Positions 10,701 to 58,500 of a DNA stretch of 64,000 bases are shown here, one piece after another (position 1 is the stretch's first letter; each line of letters starts with the position of its first letter). Source of the DNA: Camelus dromedarius. Its lineage: Eukaryota. The notes under the pieces were generated by a model. The model worked only from the letters and a program-made list of their open reading frames with translations, ran no database searches and had not been told where the DNA came from. A program made the position numbers and the translations under genes. The stretch is taken from NCBI RefSeq assembly GCF_036321535.1, contig NC_087454.1:27032001-27096000 (forward strand). Reading direction: 5' to 3'.

Positions 10701-13700
10701 GAGGCCAGGAGGTCTCTGCCCTGGAAAAATGCCCTCTTCCCTTGCTTGATTATGTGCCTAGAGCCATACTTCCTGGGCACCAGACCCTTGCCCACTTTGC
10801 CCAGAACACCCCCAGGCTCTGCCCTTCCTCTGCCCCTCAGCTCCAACTCACATCCTGGAAGGTGTGCATGGTGACGATGATCTCATTGGTCAGTGCCGAG
10901 CAGTCTTCGTTCTCACTGGCTGCAAAGAGAAGATGTAGCAGGTGAGAGAGGAAAAGTCCCCGGGGAGGAGAGCAGGAGAGCAAAAGGGACCCCACAGTAA
11001 GACTGGAAATCTGAAGCAGCTGTGCAGGCCACCCCGGCTTCCTCACTGCGAAGATCTGCCGTGGCCCCTTGCCTTTAAGAGAGGGTCTGCGGGCACGGCT
11101 GAGTGAGGAGCTGCGGGGTTCCAGGGTGACCGGGAGCAGAGAGGAGAGGGCAGCAGGTGGATGCGAGGCTCCTGGACTACCTGCTTTTCTGCGGAAGCAG
11201 AAGGAGCGGAAGGGGCACTTTCCATGCCAGATGTGCAGATGGGGGACCAGCTGGCAACTGCTGTCGTCCACATTCTCCCAGCCTGGGGAGGGGCAGAGAG
11301 CAGAGGGCCTCAGAGAGCGGGGCCTTCCACGAGGGTTTAAGGAGGCCACTGTGTGGCAGGCGCTGTGCAGGGCGCTGTGGGGAGGGCCGGGGAGGGAGCA
11401 AAGGCCGGAGGGCGACTCAAGTGGATGGGAGCCCCCAGAGCCTGGGGGGGACCCCTGAGCGGTCTTCCTTCTACCAACACACACTGCCCCCAACACACAG
11501 CACACAGACCCCCACCCCTCCACCCTCCACTCCAACCCCCACCCTCCCATCTACTACCCCCAGAAGCAGCCACACATGTGTTCCCATGTCCTCAGGCACA
11601 CAAACACCCCGACCCCATCGTCAATTCCTGTAGCCAACCCACAACACAAGGAGGGCAGAAAAGACTGGGCCTCCTCCTCTGACACCAGCTCCATCAGGAT
11701 GGGACAACAGAAGCCTCCCCTCCCCTCCCTGACCCTGTGGGAGCCACACCTCTCCTCCCACCTCCCATCCACGTCACCTACCCTCCTACGGAGGGACTGG
11801 TGCTGAGTGGGCAACAGAGGGAGGAAGTGGGCATAAGCCTGGGGCTCTGGGAGGCACAGCAGGAGCCAGAGGCCCCCTTGAAGCTGCTGTCAACCCAGGA
11901 TTCTCGAAAAGCAACTTGGAGTTCCCAGATTCCCACCTCAGGAGAGGTCCAGACCCCCTCCTCCAGTGGGATCCTGTTGCCCTGCCCCCCGGGCCTGCCT
12001 CCCTCACCCTCGGAGATGTATTTGAGTTTCAGGCACTGGTCCCCTTGGGCCCCGGTGAAATCGAAGAGCTGGCAGGGCCCACGCAGGCGCCCGCCGTGCG
12101 GCTGCTCGTTGGTCACAGCCCACTGCAGGGCACAGGGCGTGTTGTTGAGGAAGTAGACGCGCAGCTGCAGGTGGGACTGCCCCGGAGCCAGAGGCGAGCA
12201 GAACACGGCCAGCTGCAGCCACTTGCGGGCTTCCCGGCCCACCGGCGCCTCCAGCACGCAGGTGTAGAGGCTGCGGAGAGAGGCGGTGGCAGGGACCATG
12301 CACAGTGCCTGAGGGAGAGGCTGGGACACCAGCCCACCTGCCACCAAGCTCCCACTGCACCAGGGGCCTCTGTGGAGGCCTCCAAGGGGATGAAGAGAAC
12401 ATTCCAGGGTGTGTGTAGGGAAGGCCTGGGGCGGAGGGGTCAGCTAAGGGGACAGAAAGTGAGTCATGTCACAGTGACCGTCACTGAGTAGGGAAAAGAG
12501 CCAGTGTGGGAAAGAGGGAAGCTAGTCTCAGGGCTGCCATGCTTGGGAGGGGTCCCACACATGGCCCTGCTCTGGTCAGTGGGTGGCAAGGGGACTGGGA
12601 GGCAGAAGGGTCTAAGTTTCTAGAAAGACAGAACTAAGGACAGACGTGAGATGGGACGGAGTCAGAGAACTGGAGGGGGCAGACTGCCCTAGTCAGTTTG
12701 GGGATAGTCTTGGACTGGGGCACAGGGAAGAGACAATCTTAGGAACAGAGGTAGAGATGGGACAGGCCCCCTCTAGACAGAGGACTCTGGGTAGGCAGAG
12801 GGGACCACAGTAAGGTGCGCAGTCCTGGACAGGGTTGGACAAGGTAAGCTGTTGTAGACACTAGGACAGAGGGACTGGGGAAGGACACGGGGATAAGGTA
12901 TTTACAGGCCATCATGGACAGATAAAGGGGCCACCCCTACAGAGAGGTGAGGGTGAGGCCAGCAGAGAAAGGAGGCAGGAAGCACAGGCCGATGGGCAGG
13001 TGCCTACCTGAAGTGGGAGAGGAGGATGCGACATTCATCCCGGGAGGTGTGGTCTCCTGGCCGCCCCAGGGGCTTCCAGGCCTTGGCGTCCAGCAGGGTC
13101 GTGTTGCTGCTGTAGGTGCGGGCGTGGCTGGGTTGCTGGGCACAGTGCTTGAACGTGAGGGTGCAGGGCTTCAGGAAGGAGGCCCCATGGGGGCCACACG
13201 CCACCACGGGGCTCACCAGCCCCTGGGCTCGGGACAATGACGGGGCGTCTGACAGATCCCACACCAGGATCAGTGACACGCGCTCCTGGCGTCCCACAGA
13301 CACAGCACCTGGGGAGGGGGCGAGCTGAGATGGGCCTGGCAAGCAGATACACCCTACCCCAGAAGACGCCGGGCCAGAGTGGGAGAGGAGGTGGGGCAGG
13401 AGCCCAGGAGAGACGGTGCCCAGGGGAGAAGACACACGGGGAGGCAGCACGGAAGGAGAGGAAGGTGACTCTGACTGCCTTGTGATGTCACCCTGAGCAA
13501 GTTGTCTCCTTCCTCCCAGGGCTGCTGCCAGCTCACTAGAACAAGGCCCTTTACTTCCACCTGCCAGGAAGCTGTCATAAACATTTGTAATATATCAACC
13601 TTTAGAGTCAAGAAAGTCAAACTAAACATATAAACAATTTTCAAAATTATGACAATGTCTCTGAATGGTGCTCCCTTGGAGTTGGTGCCCTTGTCCAATG

Positions 13701-14132
13701 TGCAACGTGAACAACTGTACCCTGAGAAGGGAGCTGGGTGCTGTTACCTGGTGGGATAAGCAGGGAAATGCCCGTATCCTGGAGCATCAGGCAGCCGCCT
13801 CGGTGATCCACCTCTCGAGCCGAAAACACCAGCAGCTTGTGCATCAGCTGGCGGATGACGGTCTGGCCTTGGGTGGGTGTGTGCAGTTCCTGGTAGAAGG
13901 CGGCCACCTCCTGCAGCGTAGCTGGTGGGAACTGCCTGGAGGACTCATTTTCTGGCAGGGGAGTGGGATGGGACACTGGTTCCTCCAGGCTCTCCAGCTT
14001 CCAGCAGGCACCCAGCAGCCGGCGAGGACAGCGCCATCGAAGGCACTGGGCCAGAAGGACAGCACTGGCCACCGGAACCCCCACCAGCAGTAGGAACTGG
14101 GCGGGATGGAGGGAACTCTCATGGGAGCACAT
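7550..14132 (-). CDS. UNC5CL: UNC5C-like protein (ZU5 and death domain), 518 aa; complement(join(13748..14132,13008..13308,12008..12270,11181..11282,10852..10919,9912..10012,9670..9783,7550..7772))
   Basis: Eight exons with GT-AG boundaries and consistent phases sum to 1557 nt (518 aa plus TGA). The translation runs [27 protein letters not shown]...[10 protein letters not shown] (ZU5)...[12 protein letters not shown] (death domain)...ELDEKF and matches recalled mammalian UNC5CL. Confidence 0.96.
8513..8727. mobile_element. TcMar-Tigger MITE (Tigger2/MER28-like) in the last UNC5CL intron
   Basis: TIRs TAGTTGACCCTTGAACAAC / GTTGTTCAAGGATCAACTG, followed by TA. Confidence 0.8.
9670..9783 (-). 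CDS. UNC5CL: UNC5CL coding exon 7 ([38 protein letters not shown]), death domain
   Basis: Acceptor CCGCAG|; donor CCG|GTAAG; 114 nt. Confidence 0.95.
9912..10012 (-). CDS. UNC5CL: UNC5CL coding exon 6 ([10 protein letters not shown]...PPCNR)
   Basis: Acceptor GCTCAG|; donor TAG|GTGAG; 101 nt. Confidence 0.94.
10852..10919 (-). CDS. UNC5CL: UNC5CL coding exon 5 ([23 protein letters not shown])
   Basis: Acceptor TTGCAG|; donor GAT|GTGAGT; 68 nt. Confidence 0.95.
11181..11282 (-). CDS. UNC5CL: UNC5CL coding exon 4 ([10 protein letters not shown]...FRRKA)
   Basis: Acceptor CCCCAG|; donor GCAG|GTAGT; 102 nt. Confidence 0.95.
12008..12270 (-). CDS. UNC5CL: UNC5CL coding exon 3 ([10 protein letters not shown]...KYISEG)
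   Basis: Acceptor CCGCAG|; donor GAGG|GTGAG; 263 nt. Confidence 0.95.
13008..13308 (-). CDS. UNC5CL: UNC5CL coding exon 2 ([11 protein letters not shown]...LSHF), ZU5 domain
   Basis: Acceptor CCCCAG|GT; donor CAG|GTAGG; 301 nt. Confidence 0.95.
13748..14132 (-). CDS. UNC5CL: UNC5CL coding exon 1 (MCSHESS...LLIPPG), includes the N-terminal hydrophobic segment
   Basis: ATG at 14132-14130; donor CCAG|GTAAC at 13747. Confidence 0.95.
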
Positions 14133-14419
14133 CCGCCTGGTCACTTGATGCTGCCAGATCCCCTGCACCCCTGTGCCAGCAGAGGCCAAGGGCTCAGGGG
14201 AAAAAAGGAGTCAGTGCCAGATGAGCCTTTTCAAGGTCACGGAGGTGAGACTTGGCTTCCAAAGTGGCTGCAATGAGGGAGCAAATTGTCTTCATCTGCA
14301 TGAACCCCACATGCCCCGGTCAGATCAATTCCTTTAACAGAACTTCACCTATCTCTCTCTTCCTCAAGAACCTGCCATGGCTCCCCATGACCTAGTACAT
14401 CAAATTAATCTCCCATGAG

Positions 14420-18870: not shown

Positions 18871-21009
18871 ACTTGTCACCATGTTCTGACCTCCTGCAGC
18901 AGAGGAGCCATGGTGAACTCCCCCAGCCGGGCAGTGATCATCTGTCCTAGAAAATAAGTAACTGCTCCTGCTTTCATCTTAGTTAATGATTCCCTGGCCT
19001 CCTGCCCTGGACTAAAACCCCCTCCCCTCTGCTACCTTTCCTGGGAGGATGGGATAAATGCCTCCTAGGGGTGCCCAGGTCCCCAAAGTGGAGAGATGGG
19101 GCAAAGGAATAGTGGAGAGCCGCCAACCTGGGGAGGAGACCTCCTGTCTAAAGGACAAGCGAGGAAGAGGCACTCAGAACTTTGATAGGGACGAAGAGGG
19201 GAGGTGTTAGTCTTTGCTGGACAGAGCTCTTTCTGAGTCATACAGAAGGCGTTCTCCTCTGAGTCATGAGCTCCCAGGGGTTTGTGAAACATCTGTCAAG
19301 CTCGATTCCAAGCCTGGAAGGGCCATGCCAACTACAGATTATAACCAGGGGCTGTGTCCATGTCTCATGAGCTCATTTCTGAAGCTGGTGCTTGCCTCAC
19401 CTGGGGACAGCCCCTGCTACAGGAAGATTCTGGGGAAATCTGAGGGTCCTCACCACCCCCATGGACACAAAGCTGTTCATGGGATGCAGAGACCACAGAC
19501 ATCAGTAGCCTGGCAGCCTGGGGCTGAACTGTCTCAGGAGGTCCGGGTCTTGCAGTGCCAAAGCCTCAACTGTTCCATTAAGGGGGGGGGGGGCCTCCAG
19601 AGGCTAGGTCCAACAGATCAGGAGACCCCTGTTGAAAGGAACCCTTCAGGGCCATGCAATCTGAACTCCCCAGCCAATGTCACCACCCTTGTCACTGGAG
19701 AAAGGCAGCCCAGCTGGGAGCCCCACTCCACCCCTCCCCCCGCCTCCCACCCTCTGCCTTCCACATCATATGTCAGCGGGCACTCAGTCTGGGAGATGTG
19801 CTGCCTGAGGTAAGGGGAACACAGGCCTGGGAATAAATAAGGGGACACCAGGAGTGAAGAAGAACAAGAAGAAAGGATTGGAGCAAGGAGGGGGGCCCTC
19901 CGACACTGGATAGAAAAAAAGAAAACAGACAGAGAGACAGGAAGGCAGAAAGTGAAGACATGGATGGTGAAGAGCAGAGAAAGATAAATAGAAAGGTGTC
20001 CAGGCCGGCAGGCTGGTCAGCCCTGTCCCTAGAACCTCCAAGACATGTTCCTGCATCCTTGACAAGAAAGGATGGAGTGGGCAGTCACTCCAGAACACTG
20101 AGAATAATCAATCACATCAATCATGGGCAGGAGGCTGAAATACCACAGGCAAAGGAGAAGCATGATATTGGGTGGGGGCCTTGGTTGGAGGAGGGTCTGT
20201 GCATCACCCCACATGCGAATGACTTAACAAACCAAAATGCAAATGAACATGGCAGCATTTTCATCAGAGACCAGGCAGTTATTTCCTTGAGAAGTCAGGC
20301 CACAAGAAATCTGGGTGCTCATGTAGGTGGCCCTGACCCTCTGTAAGTGGAAAGATGGAAGGGGAACCTCCCCCAGCCCTGGAGAGATAGATGAGAGCTT
20401 CAGAGAAAGGCACCTACAGTGTCACTCTGCTGAGTTTGAATTTGGGCAGGTGCTCAGGTGGGGTGGGCTCCTGTAGTCTGCCAGTCTGGTACAGCAACAT
20501 AAGCCAGGGCAGATGGGCTGGCCCATTCTGGACCAAAAAAGACTCCCAGGGATCTCTGGCTCCTGCCTTCCAAACGTGGTTCTTCCAGGTTGGTTATGGC
20601 AACTTGGTTGAATTCAGTCTAAGACACTGTCCCATCGAGGGCCTGCTATGTACCTGGCCAAGTGCCACCTGCTGTGGGAGGCAGAAAAGACAGGCATAGC
20701 TGGACCTGAGATCCAGGAGTCAGACACACGCTGGGGAAGAGGAGTCTTCACTAAGAAGCAGGTATCAATACTGGACAGTATACTCGGTGCCAAATGAGTG
20801 GTGTGGAGAAAAGAAGTGCATGGAAAACAGAAAAGGCGGTGTGGGCTCAGAGGAGCAGGATGGGAGCTGGCCCAACACAGCCTCTAGGACTAGACCTCCT
20901 ACAAAGGCTCAGGTAGAAGGAGACAGATGGGCAGACACAGGGAAAGGACCAGGGGAAGGCTACCATTAGTGTGTTCTCTGCCTCCCCAGATTGTGCCTCC
21001 TTGAGGAGA

Positions 21010-21182
21010 ATGTGGCCTCAAGGGGTCATCTTCATGGCCCTGGCACTCCTAGGGCCCACCCTGGTCAGGCTGTTCACCCATCATTGGACGTCTGGTTGGT
21101 GTAACAGCCTGAAGTAGCTGCCCTGGTGCCCATCCCACAAGGTTTTGTTGCTTGTGTGGACAACCATCTACCCTGTCATAGG
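21010..21182 (+). pseudogene. TSPO2: TSPO2 coding exon 1 with a premature TAG at codon 36
   Basis: Acceptor CCTCCCCAG| at 20989; ATG at 21010; ...AAG TAG CTG CCC TGG TGC...; donor GG|GTGAGG at 21183. Confidence 0.88.
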
Positions 21183-21553
21183 GTGAGGACCCATTTCTCA
21201 TGCTATGGGGTGGGAACAAGTCTCCCATCCCTGAACTGCTGCTGCATTCTGACCTCCAAAGGGCTGGTACCTCATCTTGCCTCCTCTGATGTGTCCCCTC
21301 TGTACCTGCCTTGGATTCCAGCCCGTCTTCTTCCACCCTCTCCCAGTCTCTCCATCCCCTCCCCACATCACCAAGCCCACTTCTTCCCACCACTTTCCCC
21401 GCCCCAGCCCTCAAATGAAGCCTAGACCCACTTACCCCTTTTCAGCCCAGGAGGATTACCTCTTGGTAACCAAAATGCCTTACGCCAGAGGGCTTCCTCC
21501 ATTTACCATGGAAACACTCTCTTCTGAGCGTTTCTGCCACCATCTCTCCACAG

Positions 21554-21692
21554 CTATGCCTCCTACCTGGTGTGGAAGGACCTGGGAGGGGGCTTCGAGC
21601 GGGCCCTGGCCTTGCCTCTAGGCCTCTCTGCTGCGCAGCTCGCCATCAGCTGGGTTGTCCTGATTCTCTTCCTAGCCCACTCCCTGGGTCTG
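21554..21692 (+). pseudogene. TSPO2: TSPO2 coding exon 2 with a non-canonical donor (GA instead of GT)
   Basis: Acceptor CTCCACAG|; translation YASYLVWKDLGGGFERALALPLGLSAAQLAISWVVLILFLAHSLGL, followed by GAAAGT. Confidence 0.87.
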
Positions 21693-21929
21693 GAAAGTCA
21701 CAAGGGCTCAGCACTGGAATAGCGTGGGAAATGGGGGGCTGCCAGGACCCAGAAGCAGATGGAATGGCAGGTCAATCGGGTGCAGGCAGTAACGGCTGGG
21801 CAGACTTCTCTGAGCCCCTGTGGTGTGCACAGAGTGCCAGGAACTGGACTCGCTGGGTCCAGGATGCTGCAGAAAGGTCAAGGGCCACTTCCCAGGGCAG
21901 CCTGCCTGACTGCCCTGCCCTCTGCCCAG

Positions 21930-22130
21930 GCCCTGCCACACCTGCTGCTGCTCTTCGGGCTGGTGGTGAGCATGGCACTGATCTGGCACCCCACCAACAA
22001 ACTGGCTGCCCTGCTCCCGCTGCCCTACCTGGCCTGGCTCACTGTGATCACATCCATCACCTATCACCTGTGAAGGGACAGCCTTTGTCCAGACCACCAG
22101 CCTCGGCCCATGGGGGAGAAGAGTAACTGA
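21930..22130 (+). pseudogene. TSPO2: TSPO2 coding exon 3 with a premature TGA in the CRAC motif
   Basis: Acceptor CTGCCCAG|; translation ALPHLLLLFGLVVSMALIWHPTNKLAALLPLPYLAWLTVITSITYHL*RDSLCPDHQPRPMGEKSN*. Confidence 0.88.
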
Positions 22131-22300: not shown

Positions 22301-22559
22301 TTCTGTATTAATAAGCATTAATTTAATTGTATAAATGAATAAAATCCTGTTAATGAACTTTGAGGGTATGATGTCCAGGGTGGCAGGGCCGGAATGAGTG
22401 TGTCTGCATGTGTGTGAGTGTGCACACGTGAATGAAGGTGTGAATGCACGTATTCGGAGGGCGGGCGCACCATCTCCACTCACATGCCCTCCCAAACCTG
22501 ACCCCGAAGTTTAGGACTTAGATTACTGATTACCTGAAAAACAAAATGTATTTGAAAAG

Positions 22560-24045: not shown

Positions 24046-26672
24046 GGGAATGAGTGGTTAGCAGTTCTGGCCTTGGAGACAGACCAGCTTGGGCTTGGAT
24101 ACTGACTCTGTCATTTATTAACTGGTAACTGGGTACGAGTAACTGACTTCACTGTCTGTGCTTCATGCTCCTCAGCTGTAAAATAGGGACCTCAGGGAAC
24201 TGCTGGGAAGAGTAAATGTGCCCAGCTGCTCCATCGCTGCGTGACCTTAAACAAGTGAACACCCCAGAAGTATCTGTCATTGTCCTTATGTCACCATCTC
24301 ATGTAGGCATTACAAATATGCTACCAGTTTCATTTATGTTACCAATTCTAGAAGTTAAACTGGCCCTCCAAGAAGATGCACCATGCCTATCATATGACTC
24401 AGACCTCCCCAGGCCAAGCTGATGCCACAAGCCCAGGGATCCAGATGCCTCTAGTTTTGGATATTGGCCCTAGAAGGAAGCTTGACTTGGGTCAACCCGG
24501 AACTCTCATCCTCTGACCCCAAAGTCGTTCTTAAAATCCCCCTCAGCACCAGCTCCTTGGTTCCTGAATGGGAACCTCTAATCCCCGAGCCTCCCCACCT
24601 TTCCTCTTACCTTTCCTCTACCCCTCTTCCCAGTTCTGAGCCCAGCCTGGAGTACACGCTGCCCTTGGCCCCTCCTCTCTTGTTACCTAGAGCTGTGCCT
24701 AAATAGAGTCGGAGCTGTCTCCTCTCTTTGCCAGATGCAGCCCAGGAGTCCACCATCCAAATCACATGTGTGTGCGTCTCTGTCCTTGGGCAGTGTTTTT
24801 CCACTTGCCTCTGAATGGGCACATCGTGTCTGAAAGTGATTCACTCGGAAGGTAGGGGAGAGACAAGCCCTTCACCAATGTCTGGAGAGGTGGGGAGCAG
24901 CACCATGCAAAATAGCAACCTCAGAAGACAGGGTTATGTCTCAGTCTACTGTCTCCTGGTGCCGTCTTTCTCCCCTGAACCCTTCAATTTCCTCCCTTTG
25001 CCAATGTCTGCAGAATGCGAATACACAGGGGTGAGGTGAGATGAGCAGACTGGTAGGTGTATATCTAGTGGACAAAGGTCAGCTGGGCTGGGAGAGGGGC
25101 AGAGTGCAAGCAGTGTTTTCTCTGCACATCTCCGGCCCCTCCTACCTATGGGCAGGTAGAGGTGATGCCCTATGGGAGGCGTAAGGCCCCTGAGTGCTGT
25201 CAGGCCCCGGCCAGGGCTCCAAAGTCATGGCCACCATCCACTCTATCTCCTGGGGTTCCCCTGCACACCAAGCCCAGTTTCAAAGTCTTCCCAGGGTTCC
25301 CTTCCCTTGTAGTTCCAGAAAACAAGCATAAGAACCTTTTGTTTTAAAGATTTATTGCTGATCCTCATTAGTGATGCACAGGTGACCCATCTAAACAAAG
25401 CCTGACTTTAGTCAGGGTCCCCTCGGATCTGGACCCCCCCTTTCATCCTCAAGCAGAGTCCACCAAGGCCCCTGGCTCTTGCCTAGCTTCAAGGACCCTT
25501 CATCACGGAGGCCCCCCTTCTAGCACGCAAGCCAGGAGAACCCCTCTGTGTCACGCCAGACACAACAGTAGCTATTTGGCCTCATTTGTCCTCTAGTGTC
25601 TATCTCCAAGTCCCCCAGCCCATTTAGAAATGATTTGCTCAGGAGATCACCTGAAAAGCCCTACCCCCTCCACCTGCACCTACTCCAACACATTTCTACG
25701 GGCTGAAAATCTCCTCTCAAAAGTTGATTATTAAATTCATCACTTTCTCCCAGTAGGTTCTTCGACCCGGCAAACATCCCTTCAAAGGGGAACACTATTA
25801 GTCAACTTAATGGCCATGATTCTTATCAGACCATTTTCCTCAAAGACTCCAACCATGGGAGCCAGGTGGTGCCAGGAGTGGCCTCTAGAATGGAAGACCA
25901 TGGTGACCAGGACTAAAGTTCCAGGTGTCACCATTCTCCCACAGGGTAGTGTGTCCTGCATGGCAAGCCAAGCATGGTGACCCGCACAGGAGGCGATTGG
26001 AAACTCTGGCCTCCTCCCATCCCAGCCTCAGACTCTAGGAGACCCGTGGCCCTCTCCCCGCATCCCGCCAAGGCTCTGGACACCCCTGTGTTTATGTCAA
26101 CAGAGCACTTGCCGACCGGGGCAGGCTCCTGCCTGCCAGCGGGGTGCCTGGTACTCGTGGCCCGTTGTTTGTGTACCTCGTCTCAGTAGTGACTGAGGGG
26201 CAGGCACTCCCAGGCTGGGTCTCTGGGGCAACGTGCTGTTGGGGTCCCAGCTGTCCCTGCACATAAAGCACCCACAACGGGCTCCCGAGGTGTCTTCTTT
26301 CATAGGGTGAGAATTTAAACCTTCCCCTGGTGAGGCTGCTATTTTCCACCAGCCTCCAGCTGGCCTCTCTACTCCCTTCCCAGTGAGGGCAGCTTGGCAT
26401 CAGGCCGAGACCCAAGGAGTACCCGAACCTGACCCTGTCCCCTCCTCCCCAGCCACCTCCCAGAACCTCTGAATGCTTTCTGAAACAAGCGTGGGAAATG
26501 GGACAGGGAGAGGCAGGCCACAGCATACCCTGGGCTTAATCCTTCTCATTCCAGCCACCTCCACCGCACAGAAAGGGGCTAGGGCTAGGGCTACAGAGAC
26601 AGGTTGGGAAAATTCCCTTTTCTGTTTCCATCCCCACTCACCAGCTGCCTGGTGTCTCCATACCTATACCCC

Positions 26673-26674
<2 letters not shown>

Positions 26675-26720
<46 letters not shown>
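26675..26720. repeat. (AC)23 microsatellite
   Basis: Read directly from the sequence. Confidence 0.95.
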
Positions 26721-30702: not shown

Positions 30703-30833
30703 ATGGCCCAGAAAGAAGAGGCCGCTGCGGCCGCGGCGCCTGCCTCCCAGAATGGTGAGGATCTGGAGAACCTGGAGGACCCCGAGAAGCTGAAGGAGCT
30801 GATTGAGCTGCCGCCCTTTGAGATCGTCACAGG
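30703..30833 (+). CDS. APOBEC2: APOBEC2 coding exon 1
   Basis: Kozak CCATGG; donor GG|GTGAG at 30834. Confidence 0.96.
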
Positions 30834-33800
30834 GTGAGAGCCCGGTGTGGGCTGGGCTTCTCCTCCCTAGAAGAGCACCGGCTGGGGACAGGTTGGGGGC
30901 ACCGAGGACGATAATCGGAGGGGTCAGGGTCTCCGTCCTGCAGTGTGAGAGTGCGCAGCGGGGGCTGCAGGGGACCCAGCAGCAAACTCTCTTGCTTCTA
31001 AGTGACACCTTGGACCCTCTAACAGGGGAAGTAGGAGGAGCTCCGCGGAGGTGAGGGCCCAGAGAAGGAAATCACCCCTGAGGTTTCATGGTTTGGGGGC
31101 GTCCATCAGCTGCCTCTCTGAGTAGATGTTGTATAGTTCTAGGGAATTTGGTCAGAACACCGGATGCCACTGGCACGTGTCAGTGTGGCCCCAAAGTACC
31201 TCTTCCCCCAGCTTCTCTCTCTGCTTCTGAGTGGGCCTCTCCTCTACCTGTATGTTTCTCTTTCTTTAGAGCTTCTCTCTGGAATAGAAGATCCTAAGAC
31301 AGGAAAGATAGATTCATCCTTTCCCAAGCCAGGGTGAGAAGAGGTTTTCTCCCTTGCTGAATCTTTTCTAAGTCTCCCCAGGGACTATGCACACCTGCCC
31401 CCAGGGAAGCAGAGACGTTACAGGCCGGGTAGCACAGGCTAGGCCCCACAGCTCCCAGGCAGAGGAGTTCCAAAGCCCTCAGCCACAACCCGGAGGAACC
31501 AGGACCCAGAGCAAAGAGTCTCGAGGCTCCAAACGGGGGCTGCACAGAGGGTCCCCTTGTCTTGTCCAGATCAGGCCATTTCCAGGAAGAAAAAAAGCTG
31601 TCTTTTTCCTTTTCCCTCTCTGTCCCTTTAGCAGAAGATTCGGGTAAGTTCCTAAACAAAGAACAAGAAGGGAATATGTGGGGCCTGAGGATTCCTTCCT
31701 GGGAGTCTCCAGCAATGCCCACAGGCAGAAGAGGGGCTACACTAAGAGAAATTTCAGGAAGAACAGGGGCATGATGCCTTCAAGGGGCAGAAGGAGGCCT
31801 GGGAGGCAATTTGGACTTGCTGTTTGAAGCTGGGAAAGTGAATTTCTAGCCCTGGCTGCAGTTTTTCATTCGTAACATGAGGAAGTTACACTAGTTGATC
31901 CCGAAGATCCCTTCCAGCTCAGATATGTTCCGGTTTCTAAGAGAACCTGAGGGAAAGGCATCTTAGTTCCTGAGGCAAGAGTTCAGGGAAGAGCCCTTGA
32001 ACTTGCATTCGCCCATGCCCAACCAAGTAATGTCACCCTCATCCCAGGATTAAGGGACCAATGGGACACAGATTAATTTAGACGCAGGGAGGGCCTAGGG
32101 CCACCAGGCCAGGAGAGTCCTTGATTCCAGTGTCCTCCTCTCTATGGAAGGAGATCCTTTTCCTAAGAGCTAAGCATGCTGGTCCCTGCTGCCCTTGGTC
32201 GCACACACACAGGCACATGCACACCCACTCTGCGCAGTGCTGTGATCTTCCCAGCACAGGGGTGGGGTAAGTCCAGAACAGAATTAAGAGTATGTCTGTT
32301 GAGTTGAACATGCTTTGTGGTCTCAGGGTGGTGGGTTTTGAAAGATTAAATCCCCTGATGTCACTTCCACTTGTCTGGGGCTTTATAGTCCCGGCACACT
32401 CACATGCCTGAGCTCCTTCAAGCCACTGCACAAGGCGAGGAGGGGTGCCCTATCATCCCCACTCCACAGATGGGGAACTGAGAGTCAGGGAAATGGAGTG
32501 ACTGGTCCAAGAGCACAGAACCAGTAAGTGGCAGGTCTTCTGACTCTAGCCAAGCGTCCTTACCACTTGTCTCTTACTCATGCTGGGTCCCCGATTTCTG
32601 AGACAGAGCTCCGCCTGTCTCCATCTGCAAAGTTGTGAGGCTCAGTGGCTTCCCTGACCCAAGGCTCAGAAAAAGAGGCAGAAGTGGGGCCACTTTCCAG
32701 TGCTCTGAGAACAGTTCAAGAGGGAAGTGGGGCCCTGAGTGTTTCCCGGCCACAGGCAACAGCTGTGGAGACTGGTCTCCTGGGCCCCTCCGGGTAAACA
32801 GACTGCTTAAAATAGCGCAGAGGTGCGGCTGTGTCTGTGCCGGGGCAGGATGAGGGAACCCCATCCCTCTCCTTCACTCTCCAGGTGCCCTGGCGTCAAA
32901 AGAGCCAGCAGAGCCAGGACTCCCACAGGGGTGGGTCTAGCAACACTGCCCCTACGATTCTGGCCCCAAACTAGAACAGCAGGTGGCTTTTCAGGAAACA
33001 GTCTTAGGTGAGGAATAAGGAGAGAGATGTCTGCTTGTTGTGATTCTGGTTTGAACAGGGCAGTCGGGATAGAAAGCAGACCTCAGAACACTAAAAATAA
33101 TGGGGTGGAAATTGCTCGAGAAAGGTCTATAACTGTGGTGTGCCCAGGCCCGCTCAAGTTGGCTGAGTTGTTTGGGTGCATTTCTTACCAACTGTGTTCA
33201 GTGACTTTATGCTGCTTTCTTGAAATCTCCACAATGGGGGTGTTTACAGAAATCAGCAAATNNNNNNNNNNNNNNNNNNNNNNNNNNNNNNNNNNNNNNN
33301 NNNNNNNNNNNNNNNNNNNNNNNNNNNNNNNNNNNNNNNNNNNNNNNNNNNNNNNNNNNNNNNNNNNNNNNNNNNNNNNNNNNNNNNNNNNNNNNNNNNN
33401 NNNNNNNNNNNNNNNNNNTAAACCAGCACACCACTGAAAGAGAGAACCCTCTGAACATGAACGGGAGAGCAGAGGAGGGATCAGGTTTAGGAGTGCTTGA
33501 GGGGTAAGATTTGGGGTCCAGAGAAGGCATCACCCATCAGTTCTAGGTTTAATTTCTCAAGTGTCAACCATTGTTCAAAATCTGAGAGGTTGGATTACTC
33601 AACCTATCTTTCCGATGAGGAAACCAAGCCTCAGAGGGAGTAATAATTTGCCCAGAGCTAGCAGATGGAGTAGGGTGTGAACGCCAAGACTGTCCGATCC
33701 AAATCACTAGGCTGCATCGAAAAAAACCATAAAGAGAAGTCTTGTCATATGCAACAAATATTTTCTGAATAGGAGTCATTTATTTGCTGCCCGTTCCCCC

Positions 33801-36800
33801 CACAAGTATTTAACCTCCATGAGGACAGGGACTCTGCCTTTTAGCTGCTTTCTCCCTGGAGAACAGCACCAAGAATAGTACCCAGCTCTTAACTGATACT
33901 AAACAAATATTTGTTGAATAAATAAGTGAACAACTAATTGAGAACCTAGTGTGTGGTAGGCTCTCTGCCAGGCACTTGAAGAAGGAATTAATTGGGGGAG
34001 GGCTTCTCGAGGAGAGAAGTTCAGGATATATGAAGATCCGGCAGCGCTAGGCTTAGAGGAGAATTCCACTGGTTCGCACCTGCCTCTGAACTCAGCATGC
34101 TTTAGGGAAGCTCTGGAGCACCGGAAGAGGCTATCTCTCCATCTCTCCATCCCAGTGATGAGTGACTGCAGCTCTGCCTGGCAGCACCCCTTGCTGTGTC
34201 TTTCTCTCTAGTTATGTTGTGTGTGATTTTACATAAAGCTGAACCTACTATCAAAGGGGTTATTCTGGAACAGAGATGAATCGCACAGGCAGTGACTCTC
34301 CTTTCAACCACTTCTTTAGCCACCAGTAGTTTACTCCACCCACGTGAGGAACAGTGAGGGTTCAGAGAGGAAGGGCTGCGCAAGGAGTGAGGGGCCTCTG
34401 ACACCATTCTTAATGCTCACTAGATTCAAGGGTGCTGAGAAGGTTTGTGCCACTGACTCTGGCCACCCTGGCCTCCACTGAGGGTTGGGGGAAGGTCAAA
34501 TCTCACATGCACAGATGGTAATTCCCAGGGAAACAGGGTGGCCTCGGGGCTTGCCACAGGCAGAATCGCATCCAGAACCGCCAATCAGGAGCCAGTAGCC
34601 CATCAAAACCCTCCTTAGCTCTAGCAAGTCAGGCTGTTAGAACTCTCTGCTTCTCTCCACTCCTTCTATGCCCACTCCTCAGCATCCACTTTGAAAAGTA
34701 GTCTGACAAACGGAAAAGGAAACCGAAACTGGCAATTCTGCCCCTTTCGAGCAGGTCACAAAAGGTCTCAGTGAGCAAAGCGGAAACAAGTCAACACTCA
34801 ATTACCTGTGAGTAGATTTTCCACTCTATGGATTATTTTGTAGCAAATGTTTAATCTCCAAGTAGTTTTCACTGCCCTCCACGTTGCTTCCTTTCACTGT
34901 CTAGATTTATGCTTAAGAAATGCAAATGCTTTTCAACGTGAAAGTGAGAAAAATATATATATTACATCAACTCACATCCTTTCTCCATCAAGCTGGCCAT
35001 CGTCCCCACCATGAGGACTCTCGGTTTCCTGCCTAGAGAATTGCAATGCCCAGAAACCTGGGTCTAAGCAGATGAAGTGTGAATGTTTGCAGAAAGTATG
35101 AGGAAGTGGTGCTTGAAGAGGTGCTTGGGAGCGGGTAGGAATCATGCTGGTGGTTTCTGTGCCTGAAGAGGTGACTGAGTCCAGGTGAAGACTACCAACA
35201 GCATCTCTCTCCTACCCACCACTCCAACACACACCCACACACCACTTTAGCAGTAAAATATCTTCTGGGGTTGAGTGTAAAGGGCTGTAAGTAACCATAG
35301 TACTCAGGCATACCATGCCACCAGAAAAATAAAATATGTTTGTGATTATCTACAAGATCACTGTCACTATTTCCTTCCTTCCACTAGTGGGCATAATAGC
35401 GTTGACATATTTTGTGATTCTACAATATCACCTAAGATGGCCACGCTGTCTAGCTCTCCGGAGAAATTTCAGACCTCTACCACCCCTGTTCTCCTGGTGC
35501 CCCTCCAGGGCCTGGCTGTTTCAGTCTGTGGGAGCCCCAGAGGGCCTCATTCAACCTTTATGCTCCTAGAAGACCAAGGATCCCACTGCAAAGCCAAGCA
35601 AGCTCAGCCTCTGAGCACGCCCAAGGAGGGGCGTGGTCTGGCAAAAGGCCCTGAAGAGCAAAAAAGGCTTTCAGCAAGAAGGGTAAATAAGCTCTGTGTG
35701 TCTCCGTAGTGGGGGAAAAAAAACAGTCCAGGAAGTAAAGATATCATTTAGCAACTGGCCAGAGCTCTCAAGTGGTCTGGTGAGGTGAGTTTAAGTGGAG
35801 AGAGCTCAGTGTGAGTTCCCTGCAGGGATCAAAATAGGAGAGGGTACTCATCAGGCCAGCCATTCTCCCCAAATGTTAAGTAAACAATAAACACATCCAA
35901 CCAGGGACAGAGGGACTTAGAGAGCTAAATATAGTCCCTGAAGGAATCCCAGGGCTGGGTCCCCAAACACATCCATCTCCACAGTGGAACCTTAATCTGA
36001 CAGCAAGGGACACAGGAACCTGGGTAGAGAAAATCTGGTGATGGGGGAGGGGAGGACTGCAGGGAAACAGCTCAAGTTTACTCAGCGCTTTGGCACCTGC
36101 TGCTTATCCCTAAGAAGCCAAGGCCCTGGGATACCAGGGATCCCCCTGCAGCCCAAAGAGTTGGGTGACCTCCCCGGGGGAAGGGAAGGGGTGTAAGGAA
36201 GCAAGAGCACAGTTACTGGTTACCATAGGGCACCTTCTGGGGCAACCACAGGGATGATTACATTTTTAAAAGAAAACATTCAGCCTCTCCTTCTGACCTT
36301 TTCAATCTCTCCCGTCATAGCCTCTTCATTCTCTTTGGCCTTGAAACTTGGCACAAATCTTCCTTATTTTAGAAAAACAAGCACATACTCATAAAGAGAA
36401 AAAGTGTTCAGCTCTGATGCTCTCTCTAGCCTCTCTCCTTTTTTCTCACCTTCTTATTACTACTAAATTTTTCAAAACACCTGGCCTTTTTCTACTGCTT
36501 TCATTTCCTAATCGTCCATCTCCCCTTAAAGCCACTGGATATATTCATCACCAAGTCTGGTGTCCTAGGACACCAAGGGAAAAGCCTAAATTTCAGGCTT
36601 TCCCCAGCTTCACTCTGTCTGCCTAAAGCCATCACAGCACTCTGCCGTGGACCTTCATTATACCCTTCTTTACTCAGGAACCTGTAACAATTCTCTACTG
36701 CCTCCTGAATCAAGGCTAAACTTTCAAGAGCCTCCATCATGTGTCCTGCACTCTACGTCTTTATTTTTAGTAGTCTACAACTGTTCTCAGCTGTCTTATT

Positions 36801-38198
36801 TACATCTTCTCTGTCCAGCCAGAATGTAGCTGCTAGGTAATAAGTGTCTGGAGAAGAGAGGCCAAGTCTTTTATGATTTTGAAACGACTCAGTACTATAC
36901 ACACACTAACTCCTTTGAAGGTATCCTTAGGTAGTCTGGCCTCAAAGATAAACATTCTTGGTCACTTATGTGACAACCCTTTCACCTGAGGGAAAAGACA
37001 GACCTGAGAAAGTCATCAGGAGAGCCTGGGACTGCAAGGTTTAGGCCATCCCATGCCTAAGAAGCAGTATACATGAGTGACGAGCAGGAGAAATGAAAGC
37101 ATGAAACCTGCAACATCTTTGTCTTGCTCTGTCTTGAGCATTTTCACATTTGCCGCTTTGCACAATCACTATTTGAACACTGCTTCTCACACCTGGCCAC
37201 ATACTAGAATCATGTGGCGAGTTTTAAAATGCTGATGCCTGGCCCCCTTCAGATGTTCTGATTTCACTGGTTTGGTGTGGGGCCCTGGCACGGACATTTG
37301 TAGAGTCCTCAAGGGGATTCTAATGTACAGCCAGAGTAAAGAGTCACTGATTCAGAAATGTGGGAGTGTGCTGTGTGCTGGGAATGATGGCGGAGTGTTC
37401 GGGGACCCATCCTAATAGGGTGTCCAGGGTGCACACCTCACCCCAAATTCTCTCTTCTCCTTTAGACAAACACTTTTGGATTCTTTTGTGCCTTTCTGTC
37501 ACTGCTGTTAGTGTAGGCAAGGCCTGTCTTAATAGTAAGAGTGAATGTGTCTCCAAGGTACTGATTTTGGAGAGCTACCTACACTAGGCTAGTCCTAGAG
37601 CAAGAATTCATCGTTCTCTCTCCTTCCCTGTGCCTTTGTCTCCCTGACCCACAGGGAGCGGCTGCCGGTCAATTTCTTTAAGTTTCAGTTCCGGAATGTG
37701 GAGTACAGCTCCGGGCGGAACAAGACCTTCCTCTGCTACGTGGTGGAAGCGCAGAGCAAGGGAGGCCAAGTGCAGGCAACACGGGGATACCTAGAGGACG
37801 AGCACGCCGCGGCCCATGCGGAGGAAGCCTTCTTCAACACCATCATGCCAACCTTCGACCCCGCACTGCGGTACATCGTCACCTGGTACGTGTCCTCCAG
37901 CCCCTGCGCGGCCTGCGCTGACCGCATCATCAAAACCCTCAACAAGACCAAGAACCTGCGCCTGCTCATCCTGGTGGGGCGGCTCTTCATGTGGGAGGAG
38001 CCCGAGATCCAGGCGGCTCTGAGGAAGCTGAAGGAGGCAGGCTGCAAGCTGCGCATCATGAAGCCCCAGGACTTCGAGTACGTCTGGCAGAATTTTGTGG
38101 AGCAAGAAGAGGGCGAATCCAAGGCCTTTGAGCCCTGGGAGGACATTCAGGAGAACTTCCTGTACTACGAGGAGAAACTGGCGGACATCCTGAAGTAG
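30703..38198 (+). CDS. APOBEC2: APOBEC2 (muscle cytidine-deaminase-like protein), 224 aa; join(30703..30833,37655..38198)
   Basis: 131 + 544 = 675 nt. Translation MAQKEEAAAAAAPASQNGEDLENLEDPEKLKELIELPPFEIVTG/ERLPVNFFKFQFRNVEYSSGRNKTFLCY...HAEEAFF...SSSPCAACA...LADILK* contains the HxE...PCxxC zinc motif. Confidence 0.97.
32450..32568 (-). mobile_element. MIR SINE
   Basis: ATCCCCACTCCACAGATGGGGAACTGAG. Confidence 0.65.
33262..33418. other. Assembly gap (157 N) in APOBEC2 intron 1
   Basis: Run of N. Confidence 1.
34712..34731 (-). promoter_or_regulatory. ISRE (CAGTTTCGGTTTCCTTTTCC on the minus strand) in APOBEC2 intron 1
   Basis: Exact AGTTTCNNTTTCC consensus plus a third GAAA unit. Confidence 0.55.
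36280..36900 (+). mobile_element. Degraded L2 LINE fragments
   Basis: Pyrimidine-rich L2-like sequence ending CCAGAATGTAGCTGCTAGGTAATAAGTGTCTG; boundaries are approximate. Confidence 0.4.
37180..37350. mobile_element. MER5A-like MITE
   Basis: ACATACTAGAATCA...AAAATGCTGATGCCTGGCCCC...GGATTCTAATGTACAGCCAGAG. Confidence 0.65.
37655..38198 (+). CDS. APOBEC2: APOBEC2 coding exon 2 (deaminase domain); the exon continues to the donor at 38218/38219
   Basis: Acceptor CCCACAG|; TAG at 38196-38198; CAC|GTGAGT 20 nt later. Confidence 0.97.
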
Positions 38199-48079: not shown

Positions 48080-50110
48080 ACCCTATGTTCCGAGGTGGCA
48101 GCGTCCTGCTCGCATTTCGCGCTTTCCTAGAGCGGAAGAAAGGCGGTCCTCAGACACGCCTCCTCCTCTTACCCGCGCCGAGAAAGGCGGATTCAGGACT
48201 GTCTCCTTTTCTCTATAAGCGTTTCCCCGTTGGGTTTGGCCCACAAGCAAAAAGGTGGGACTTAGCCACAGTCCCCTTAAGTCGCAAACAGGGAGTGTAC
48301 GGGCCAGGGGGAGTATAATGCCAGGGAGAGGGAAGGCGGCCTTTCAAGGAAGGCTCACCTCCATCTTTTGAGGGCGAGGAAGGGAAGAAGTCTAGCGAGG
48401 CCTCCCATTCTGTCTCCTACCCTAGGGCGGATCAGCCAGGGCGTAGGGCCTGTCCCGGGGTCCCATGGGAGGGAGCAGGGAGGCTCGTTCAAAGTCCCAA
48501 CATACCGGGGTTACCCTTCACCTGGAAAAGAGTCGGCCGTTAGGAGGTCCCTCCCCGCAAGGAAGGGCTCTGGTAGGTGGGAAGCAGCGGACGAGCCCAG
48601 ATGCAGAGCCAATCCCGCCACGGGTCTTAATTGCACACACCTAAGATGGCCGCCCACCACCCGGGAGCGGGGCGGAAACGAGCCCCTCTAGCTACCTAGC
48701 CAAGCCTGCACTCTTTGGTGATGGCCGCCGAACTTCCGGCGGTAAATTCCGTAGAGTATCCCGCCGCCGCCCGGGCATGCGTAACGAGACAGCCGACAGC
48801 GAGTCGGCTAGAACGGCGCTTGCGCGTTAGCCTTAGGGGTGTGTCTCCAGGGGCCGCATAGAGGCGGGAGTGGGCAGTTGGCAAAAGAGTTAGTTGGCGC
48901 CTGCGTAGTACTATGTTCAGGGCGGTATTTGAGCTAAAGGGCCTGGCGCGTCTAGAAGGCGCCTGCGTATTCCTTCACCAGGGGTGGAATCTAATCAGGA
49001 AAGTGGGCGTGGCTTCGGGCGACGCCTGCGCGGTGCTCCTTCAACTGGGGGTGGGGCGAGCCCAGAGCTCGGGCTAGGGGGCGTGGTCTTGGAAGCGCCT
49101 GCGCAGAGGCAGNNNNNNNNNNNNNNNNNNNNNNNNNNNNNNNNNNNNNNNNNNNNNNNNNNNNNNNNNNNNNNNNNNNNNNNNNNNNNNNNNNNNNNNN
49201 NNNNNNNNNNNNNNNNNNNNNNNNNNNNNNNNNNNNNNNNNNNNNNNNNNNNNNNNNNNNNNNNNNNNNNNNNNNNNNNNNNNNNNNNNNNNNNNNNNNN
49301 NNNNNNNNNNNNNNNNNNNNNNNNNNNNNNNNNNNNNNNNNNNNNNNNNNNNNNNNNNNNNNNNNNNNNNNNNNNNNNNNNNNNNNNNNNNNNNNNNNNN
49401 NNNNCCAGCGTCCTCGGCCCGGAGCCTGCGAGCGCCCGGGGGCACTCCCGACCGAGGCCTGCAGGGGGCCGCCCCGCGCGGTGATGGCGTTCTCGGGAGC
49501 AGGCATTTCGGGGTCCAGACCCTTGCAGAGTGCTGGAGCCAGTTGGGGATGTGTCCCCGTCCCCCTGACCCTTAGGCTCAGGTTCTCAGGCCCCAGGCCT
49601 GGGGGTGGTGGGCTTGCCTCGCTTGAAGGCCCCTATGCTCAGGTATACACACAAGCGGTCCCAGGGCCTCGGCGGTTTCCTCCTGGTCGTTCCGGCCTGA
49701 CGTTTAAGCCCGCCCTTGAACTCAACACGCTCTGGCCCTCGGGACAGGAAGTCTCCCCCTGCAGGGCCCGCGTACCCCACCCCTCCATGAGCGGGTCTGC
49801 AAGCCCCTGCATTGAGAGGGAGGCCTGGGGAAGATGCGCGCCGCGGCCGTAGGGCCCCGCTTCGGCGCGGAGAGGAGCCCTGGCTGCCCCCGCCTCGGTG
49901 CTCTGCGGGCCCGCCCTTGCAGGCCCCCGGATCGGGGGAGGGGGTCCGTTAGTGCGCCTACTCGGGCCGCGCTGCGCCCCTCCTCCCAGCACGTTTGGCC
50001 CAGGTCTCCGGCCCGGCGCCGTTACCACCCCCTTTTGGCTCGTCATTTCCTCTCCTCCCCACCCCGATCTCGGGGCAGAGGCGCACACCTCCGTCTTGGA
50101 GCCCAACCAA
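48080..50110. promoter_or_regulatory. CpG island; OARD1/NFYA bidirectional promoter
   Basis: GC- and CpG-dense sequence between head-to-head genes. Motifs: CCAAT 48609-48613, YY1-like AAGATGGCCG 48643-48652, ETS ACTTCCGG 48732-48739, four NRF1-like GCGCCTGCG motifs 48897-49104. Confidence 0.9.
49113..49404. other. NFYA: Assembly gap (292 N) in the CpG island; probably hides NFYA non-coding exon 1
   Basis: Run of N at the GC-richest point of the island; no recognisable NFYA exon 1 end in the flanks. Confidence 0.75.
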
Positions 50111-55570: not shown

Positions 55571-58500
55571 GTATGGAAGTAAAACAGCTTTAAACATCAC
55601 AGCAACAGAGCTAATAGCACTGCTTAGTTGTGGAATTATTTGAGAGGTTCCAGACCTTCTAAGTAATGGGTCTGGTGATTTGTGTTGAAGTGCTTTTTGA
55701 AGATTGAATTTGTTGTGATTTCTGTCCTGTTTGGAACTCTGTATCCACTCTATGACCACTTACAGTTTGGAGCCTGGTTTAATAGCAGATTGCCCCCTTT
55801 ACTAAAATTCAAAACATCTAGTCTGTTTTCACATGGAACTTTGGAATTTTTAGTTTTTCTGGAATCAATTTGGTTGCTTCTCTTACTGATTAAGCTAGCT
55901 TATGATCTTTGGCCACAGTAGACAAACCATGGTAGCTTCTAAGAAATACACTGTTCTTTGATTTGATCTGTCACAGTGCTTGTTCTGAAAAGCTCTAGTT
56001 TAACATGAAGATAATATTTAGATAGCTGCACTTACAGATAAGCACATATTAGAAAGGAATTCCCCGCTGCTGTTTTATTCCTAATTAAGATAGGTTGCTT
56101 TCTTGAATTTATACACAGATTACATTTTCTGATGCTTTGTACCTGGCTTTATTTTAGTAAAATTTCACTTGTTTTTCTTCCCTCGAAGAAGTTTATTATG
56201 CATTGATTTGACTTTAGGCCAAGATTGAGAATGTTTTATTTCCAAAATGGAACTTAGATAATACAGTAAAACAGTTTTTCTATTAACTATTAACTAATAG
56301 TTATTAGGGAGGGCAAAGGACGGTAGAAAAGGGGGTCCACAAAGGACGCTCCATTCACATCAGTGCCCTGGTGGGTGAATTCTTGTCCTCTCAGAGCTTG
56401 CTATTAGGCGATATAGAAATAAGGTTCAATCTGTGAAAACATTTCTTCTAAGGTAGTTAGTCCAATTGAGTAGGAGTAATCCTAGTTTGGGGCCATAAGA
56501 ACAGTAACCTCATGAAGGTGATTTTGGCTCATAGTGATTGCTTCCTTCCTTTTTGGTGATTGCATTTAAGTTCCAGAAATTCTTCATTGTAGCTTCTCAG
56601 CTGCAAAAACCTGATTAACTTTTTTGTTCTTGTGAACTCATTTGAGGAAATGAAAAGAGCATTAAAATAACTACAAGCAGAAGGATCAAATACCTATTTT
56701 TGGAGGGAAGGACTGTGTTAAAATTTTTTGTTTTAATGATCATGGCAGCTATTTTGATGTTTTTGAGTCATAGAAGTGTTTTGAATTCCATTCTGTGGGT
56801 CAGAGGGCTAATATCTTTAATCCTGCCACTTTCAACAAAACAGCTTCTGTATAGGGAGTTTGTATAGTTTGAAAGTCCTGTGTAGGGTGGGGCTATTGAA
56901 AGAAGATCCTCCCTCTCCCACAAGAGGTAAGGTGATCTCATGTCTTGAACTATACATTTCNNNNNNNNNNNNNNNNNNNNNNNNNNNNNNNNNNNNNNNN
57001 NNNNNNNNNNNNNNNNNNNNNNNNNNNNNNNNNNNNNNNNNNNNNNNNNNNNNNNNNNNNNNNNNNNNNNNNNNNNNNNNNNNNNNNNNNNNNNNNNNNN
57101 CTGATTCTCTGTAAGCACTGCATGAACTTCTCCTCCCCTCATGTCTGGTGCTGTCTGTGGTAGGATCTTAAGGAGGGATGGCAAAGTCAGTTGCATGTCT
57201 TTGATGCTGCTAACTTGTCTTTGAGGCTTATAAGATGCCAGTTTCCTAAGTCATGTAGTGACTCCAGTATCAATCTTCTCAAAACTGCCATTTGGCTAGT
57301 GTGTTTCTTTTGGGATGCCTGGGAAAGAATCAGTATAAGTGACAGGAAGAAATTCTTACAAGTGGCATTAGAACCTGTTTAGAGCTCAGACTCTAGTCAG
57401 ATAGTGTGGTAAATTTTCTTGAATTTGTATTTATAATAGTGAAGAAGAGATGAGAATACATACGTATCTACTAGGCTAGATTGTGCTGTATTTTTATTCA
57501 AAGGACAACTCAGCTGTAAATAATGTTTATACTTGACAAGATTTAGCTAATCACTGAATCTTGTTAATCTCTTAACTGCTATCTTTTCACTACCTTTCCT
57601 GGGGAAATCATGACCTGTCTTATTAGATCTGCAAAGATTGCCCCATAGCTCTTGGTTGGACGGAGATGGCATATGCTTTCTACAGGTCTTAGGTGTTACA
57701 ACCACTATAAGAATTCCTGTTTAAACAGTGCAGTTCCCTAACATGTATGGCCAAGTTAAATAAATTAGGGTTATATTTTAGCCAGTTCCAGAGTAGAAGC
57801 ATAAGTCTTCTCTGTGTTTATAGATTACTTTAACTAAATGAACATATTTTTTAGAAATTAGCAAGATTGGAGTGCCCTGCCTTTTTTCCTCCATTGGATG
57901 GAAGTGATTCAAAGTAGGACCTAGAATGTAGAACTGGCATCTCATTTTATTATTAATACTGCTTGGCAAGCATCCTGCAGTTAACTACCCCTTATTATAC
58001 TCATTTCACTTCACCCTTCCAGCCCCACCCCCAATCCTGCTGCCCATGGTGTTTGATGATGATACACAGCCAATTCTGAACATAAATTAAGCTAAAAGAA
58101 GCTGAGCTTGTAGGTACTCCCAGACTGTATTCAAATCTCAGAGTTCAACAGCTTGTTACTCGTGTTTTTCATGCTTGCTTCATCTTATTGACATAAAGCA
58201 GTCTTGTCATTAACCACTTGTGGAATGGGAATGTAACATGCTCTTAACTGGATGGCTTCTTGTCTGATGCATGTGTCCTTGTAATCCTTTATATATTCTA
58301 AAAACAATGGGCTCCTTGGAGTCTCAAATGGTTTATCATGTGCATACATAGCGTATCAGTGAGGGGAGAAGTTAAGATGATGGATAGCCAGAAAATTATT
58401 AATAGTTGTACTATAAAACTTGTGTTTCTTACTTACACAGATTTTATTCAAAGAAATAGAAGCACTTTATGGAAATAATGGAAACTTTTTCTTTAGGGCC

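Follow-up and report, generated by a model that had tools for sequence, protein, structure and literature searches.

TSPO2 in camels: very probably a fixed unitary pseudogene with three lesions

Gene content of the window

In mammals other than camels, TSPO2 (translocator protein 2), a member of the TspO/MBR family (PF03073), is a membrane protein with five helices that binds cholesterol. We analysed its locus in a window of 64,000 nucleotides from Camelus dromedarius, and all positions given below are those of this window. The coding exons of TSPO2 lie on the plus strand between two neighboring genes, as follows.

11781-14189, minus strand: exons of the upstream neighbor, a ZU5/UPA-domain gene (UNC5CL-like)
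20990-21182, plus strand: first coding exon of TSPO2 (exon 2 by analogy with other mammals), with the start codon at 21010 and a GT donor at 21183
21554-21692, plus strand: TSPO2 exon 3 (139 nt)
21930-22130, plus strand: coding part of TSPO2 exon 4, with the ancestral stop TGA at 22128-22130
30703-38198, plus strand: the downstream neighbor APOBEC2, with its first coding exon at 30703-30834 and its last-exon open reading frame (ORF) at 37698-38198

Exons 3 and 4 were placed by matches to the Pfam TspO_MBR domain and by alignment with two outgroup genomic loci, one from rhinoceros (L015) and one from a further mammal (L012), the latter with 82.6% DNA identity to the camel locus. Exon 4 exceeded the curated threshold of 24 bits for this domain (36.1 bits, E = 6.4e-9), while exon 3, taken alone, fell short of it (20.8 bits, E = 3.5e-4). 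When the exon-4 part of the stop-free ORF of the window was used in a homologue search, the named best matches were all “translocator protein 2” and came from many mammals. The ATG and the end of exon 2 line up with both outgroup loci; the start of this exon is placed by the acceptor AG at 20988-20989, which we took from the sequence. The protein P0006 was at one point considered to be camelid, as its intron-derived part is camel-like, yet with only 82.6% identity of its contigs to the camel locus it does not belong to a camelid, and it was used as an outgroup instead.

The upstream neighbor was identified by its ZU5 (E = 8.5e-15 and 4e-6) and UPA (E = 5.9e-8) domains; it also has an N-terminal exon carrying a predicted membrane anchor. 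The last-exon ORF of APOBEC2 encodes 166 residues with 95% identity to mammalian APOBEC2 and matches the APOBEC2 family at E = 4.9e-57. This gene looks intact, and its first coding exon has an alanine-rich N-terminus. As a yardstick for the position of TSPO2 we used the human gene order, which we take to be a UNC5CL-like gene upstream and APOBEC2 downstream; in sheep and ibex, the locus tags of TSPO2 and APOBEC2 are adjacent. Because these neighbors are conserved, the camel sequence represents the ancestral TSPO2 locus and not a stray copy.

Elsewhere, the window contains three runs of N, at 33262-33418 (157 bases), 49113-49404 (292 bases) and 56961-57100 (140 bases), and the one at about 49.1 to 49.4 kb falls within a GC-rich stretch that resembles a CpG-island promoter. 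A (CA)n microsatellite at about 26650-26700 reads as HTHTHT... or VCVCVC... in ORF translations.

Lesions in the TSPO2 coding exons

The coding exons carry the following changes, each of which was placed by alignment with the two outgroup loci.

21115-21117, plus strand: premature TAG at codon 36, ancestral AAG (Lys)
21693-21694, plus strand: destroyed splice donor of exon 3, GT to GA
22071-22073, plus strand: second premature stop, TGA at codon 152, TGG in both outgroups

The first of these had been reported in a first-pass annotation of the same DNA, which treated it as a single nonsense allele. Reading the frame directly, we found 35 sense codons from the ATG at 21010 to the TAG at 21115-21117, and beyond the stop, 22 further codons of this frame, LPWCPSHKVLLLVWTTIYPVIG, retain homology to TSPO2 up to the GT donor at 21183. 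From the last base of the TAG at 21117 to the last base of the exon at 21182 there are 65 nt, and skipping of exon 2, one of the escape routes that had been named, would take the start codon with it. The claims made at the sequence level thus all held, while the framing as one nonsense allele was too narrow, since the dead donor of exon 3 and the second nonsense codon lie on the same haplotypes.

At codon 36, both outgroup loci have AAG, with flanks that match the camel sequence base for base, and the camel TAG therefore arose by one A-to-T substitution at 21115. In 18 of 20 orthologous TSPO2 proteins this position is Lys; goat has Glu and degu has Thr. As judged from these alignments, the camel codon is a true nonsense substitution, and a chance stop is ruled out.

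The donor context of exon 3 is CTG/GTAAGG in rhinoceros and L012, compared with CTG/GAAAGT in camel (the slash marks the end of the exon). The GT dinucleotides closest to the dead donor are at 21688 and 21697, which would shift the frame by -5 and +4, respectively. Exon 3 also differs from both outgroups by an in-frame deletion of 3 bp, or one codon, between 21668 and 21669. As dog TSPO2 is likewise one residue shorter in this stretch, the deletion on its own may be harmless.

The Trp at codon 152 is invariant among the 20 TSPO2 orthologues, and in-frame homology runs on past the TGA to the ancestral stop at 22128-22130. We considered decoding of this TGA as selenocysteine and rejected it: Trp stood here ancestrally, and such decoding would repair neither the TAG upstream nor the dead donor. 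Between the TAG and exon 4 of the camel window there is no in-frame ATG. Given its two premature stops, at codons 36 and 152, and the dead donor between them, camel TSPO2 has no ORF for all five transmembrane helices and the C-terminal CRAC motif.

Compared with intact mammalian TSPO2 (pig P0005, peccary P0010, goat P0028, rhinoceros P0020 and dog P0021; 169-172 residues), the camel gene has the same exon structure and phases, start, ancestral stop and genomic neighbors, and its last coding exon shares 75-89% protein identity with theirs. What sets it apart is a pair of nonsense codons, the GA donor of exon 3 and the loss of one codon.

The three lesions are single-base substitutions. An A-to-T change converted the Lys codon 36 from AAG to TAG, a T-to-A change the exon-3 donor from GT to GA, and a G-to-A change the invariant Trp codon 152 from TGG to TGA. 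Translation from the normal ATG would then stop after 35 residues, and the product would hold at most the first of the five transmembrane helices, as the first-pass annotation had also proposed. The dead donor would lead to retention of the intron or to frame-shifting cryptic splicing, and any read-through product would be cut at codon 152, still short of the C-terminal end of the cholesterol-recognition motif.

Transcripts in which a termination codon lies more than 50 to 55 nt upstream of an exon-exon junction are subject to nonsense-mediated decay (NMD). The TAG ends 65 nt before the junction of exons 2 and 3, with another junction downstream, and by this rule a correctly spliced camel TSPO2 mRNA would be predicted to be an NMD substrate. 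The fate of such an mRNA is largely moot in the case of a fixed gene loss with three lesions.

We also asked how the camel lineage has changed at other codons. By parsimony it has accumulated 20 nonsynonymous changes (two of them nonsense) against 6 synonymous ones, where the neutral expectation is about 2.8:1. The camel departs from the other mammals at five columns that are invariant in 20 of them, the highest number for any full-length sequence, and its replacements at residues invariant elsewhere include P12A, Y83S, I126T and L134P. With codons 58-73 masked in the rate calculations, Nei-Gojobori estimates of branch omega were 0.7-1.07 for camel compared with 0.25-0.53 for pig and L012, while the branch of rhinoceros and the stem was as high as that of camel. 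TSPO2 is a short and generally fast-evolving gene, with pairwise omega of 0.4-1.06. The camel rates are therefore consistent with relaxed constraint but do not prove it, given the equally high rhinoceros/stem branch. There are no frameshifts in camel TSPO2, its sole indel is in-frame, and all of its exons are still recognizable. The absence of frameshifts suggests that the decay is not very old and the presence of three lesions that it is not very young.

Camel copies, transcripts and the status of the gene

For comparison with the window, other camel copies were taken from the dromedary assembly in GenBank, GCA_000803125.3 (TSPO2 locus L001), and from ten further SRA runs, each of which supplied one Logan contig by exact look-up of the ORFs that span the intron and exon 4. 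Over 1.8 kb, L001 and the window agree at 99.94% of positions; they differ at 22105, which means that the window stems from a different animal or assembly. The TAG was present in all eight copies that cover 21115 (L001-L008, that is, L001 and seven of the contigs); A or C at this base, which had been set beforehand as the observation that would speak against the stop, occurred in none of them. The GA donor and the TGA at codon 152 were present in 11 of 11 copies.

The copies fall into three haplotype groups with 3-7 differing sites in 1.8 kb, set apart by fixed differences at 21598, 21615, 21715 (and 21816). Within the exons, the haplotypes vary at 21598, 21615, 22088 and 22105, and all four variants change the protein: Glu/Gly at codon 73, Pro/Ser at codon 79 (an invariant Pro), Cys/stop at codon 157 and Arg/Gln at codon 163. 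The stop at codon 157 (TGT to TGA) is an extra nonsense variant of contig L002. At codon 163, CGG (Arg) is found only in the window, and all other camel copies, like most mammals, have CAG (Gln).

A broader sample was provided by 31-mers of the locus. The sampled 31-mers were found in full (100%) in 19 DNA or unclassified runs with three coded organism labels, and five of the studies behind these runs cannot be the source of the window. Runs with a fourth organism label held at most 91% of them, which fits the second haplotype group and is the share expected from the four to seven differences by which the other groups depart from the window. Haplotype structure and 31-mer shares together suggest that dromedary and Bactrian camel account for the two main groups, and if this is so then the three lesions are older than the split between these species. 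All three lesions were found on every haplotype sampled. The loss looks fixed and older than the split of the haplotype groups, and it would by extension be fixed in the whole species; what we compared were assembled contigs, in which minor variants are dropped, and a rare intact allele could be hidden by them.

We then turned to transcripts and gene models of the locus. More than ten RNA-seq runs hold it as unspliced contigs of 1-3 kb that include upstream sequence and both introns, and all of the contigs that we fetched were collinear with the genome. Most of these runs are labelled “reproductive system metagenome” (contigs L002-L011, 19485-22559). Neither the TAG nor the TGA is edited in the contigs. 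They could represent pre-mRNA, an intron-retained transcript of a pseudogene, or DNA carry-over, and what they show is that no editing is visible. Their ends were considered as transcript boundaries and rejected as such, as they are scattered (19485-20417 and 22375-22559) and extend beyond both AATAAA motifs (22295 and 22338).

The only camelid protein that we found is P0002 from Camelus dromedarius (locus L001), a chimeric “hypothetical protein” of 85 residues. Its model splices 20648-20761 to 21930-22073, which joins an upstream ORF of 38 residues to exon 4 and omits exons 2 and 3, so that it retains 47 of about 170 TSPO2 residues and fewer than two helices. The GT at 20762 that serves as its donor is probably the true donor of non-coding exon 1. 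The decayed gene has misled the annotation, and the protein itself is an artefact.

A single-copy gene that one lineage has inactivated, and for which no functional paralogue stands in, is termed a unitary pseudogene. Several inactivating mutations are present here (AAG to TAG, GT to GA and TGG to TGA), each of them polarized with two outgroups. Full-length TSPO2 is not encodable in the camel copies sampled, and the protein is presumably absent. The homologue search gave weak evidence against an intact copy elsewhere in the genome, as it listed no further TSPO2-like protein from a camelid in the range of 57-182 residues. On the camel sequence that we read, namely this 64-kb window and the matching contigs, TSPO2 in Camelus is very probably a fixed, three-hit unitary pseudogene. 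As in other mammalian unitary pseudogenes, the locus is syntenic, it carries several lesions together with protein-changing drift, and its orthologues are intact in sister lineages. Unlike typical examples, its decay is shallow.

One alternative is that the TAG is a segregating null allele and that TSPO2 remains functional in many camels, the intact haplotype having escaped sampling. Comparing contigs instead of reads leaves some room for this, because contigs hide minor alleles, and among the 13 studies listed, several may be the window's own source, with independent animals uncounted. On the other hand, none of the eight covering copies, which span three haplotype groups, lacks the TAG, and two more independent lesions occur in 11 of 11 copies, so that all three sites would need to be in the ancestral state in any intact allele. 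Moreover, every exonic polymorphism changes the protein. We consider a segregating allele highly improbable. That the stop might be a sequencing or assembly error confined to one assembly has nothing to recommend it beyond the general possibility of such errors, and it is refuted by the presence of the same TAG both in GCA_000803125.3, which differs at 22105, and in independently assembled contigs from seven other runs; the chance that this explanation is correct is close to nil.

It could also be speculated that the locus yields a useful product in spite of its lesions, by read-through, by A-to-I editing of UAG to UGG, through an alternative isoform that joins exon 1 to exon 4, or as a non-coding RNA. 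The locus may indeed be transcribed, as its unspliced contigs occur in more than ten RNA-seq runs, and the GenBank model does link an upstream ORF with exon 4. However, those contigs may stem from contaminating DNA or pre-mRNA and show the TAG and TGA unedited, the closest cryptic donors change the frame, and the exon-1-to-exon-4 model keeps just the 47 residues of TSPO2 noted above. Rescue would be needed for all three separate lesions. A useful product is thus even less probable than a segregating allele, and the most likely explanation by far is that the gene has been lost in Camelus.

Possible consequences for camelid red cells

TSPO2 is specific to late erythroblasts (PMC7278357). In dogs, a missense allele (C40Y) and an in-frame allele (VFT) of TSPO2 cause the recessive high-K+ (HK) red-cell trait (PMC7278357). 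In mice, knockout of Tspo2 gives rise to binucleated erythroblasts and to an anaemia that is compensated, and Tspo2-knockout erythroid cells are depleted of cholesterol (PMC7278357). Loss of function impairs cytokinesis and maturation of erythroblasts in both species and leaves red cells with features of an immature membrane (PMC7278357).

The camel case resembles the dog HK alleles and the knockout mice of Kiatpakdee et al. 2020 in that the same gene has lost its function, and the dog C40Y substitution is four codons from the camel stop in dog numbering (PMC7278357). The viability of the mouse knockout indicates that loss of TSPO2 is compatible with life (PMC7278357). The dog alleles, however, segregate within breeds and are either missense changes or small in-frame ones, and the mouse allele was engineered (PMC7278357); the camel lesions are truncating and splice-destroying, appear to be fixed in the whole species, and are known from sequence alone.

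Few mammals have red cells as aberrant as those of camelids. The cells are stiff, flat ellipsoids in which the protein:lipid ratio is high, and their osmotic resistance is marked (PMC9926112). Their shape has been attributed to a splice isoform of 4.1R, while the high protein:lipid ratio is still unexplained; the study in question mentions the TSPO2 paper solely in its reference list (PMC9926112). In the literature that we searched, loss of TSPO2 in camelids is not described, although the supplementary tables of large gene-loss screens may list it.

We looked for the gene in camelids outside Camelus in several ways. In a search for an alpaca or llama locus by way of APOBEC2, the cluster members listed contained solely entries from Camelus dromedarius. 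A search with the exon-2 piece produced no candidates, and it was insensitive, as it also missed the called 58-residue exon-2 product of L012. Of two degenerate DNA patterns run against JGI metagenomes, one gave no match and the other gave five contigs that were alike over the pattern of about 25 nt alone and had no TSPO2 homology.

It is tempting to place the loss of TSPO2 in the ancestor that all living camelids share and to suppose a functional tie between this loss and the unique red cells of the group. We regard this as rather unlikely. If it were true, an altered handling of cholesterol during erythroblast maturation may have helped to shape the membrane, or a reorganized erythropoiesis may have made TSPO2 dispensable. 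For annotators there is a caution in these data, as the sole database protein from the camel TSPO2 locus is a chimeric model. For red-cell biologists the loss of TSPO2 in camels offers a cheap and testable lead, in which the link to the red cell is an idea and not a finding. A lineage that is fixed for a TSPO2 null must tolerate the loss or compensate for it, and camels would represent a natural knockout in animals whose red cells are themselves odd.
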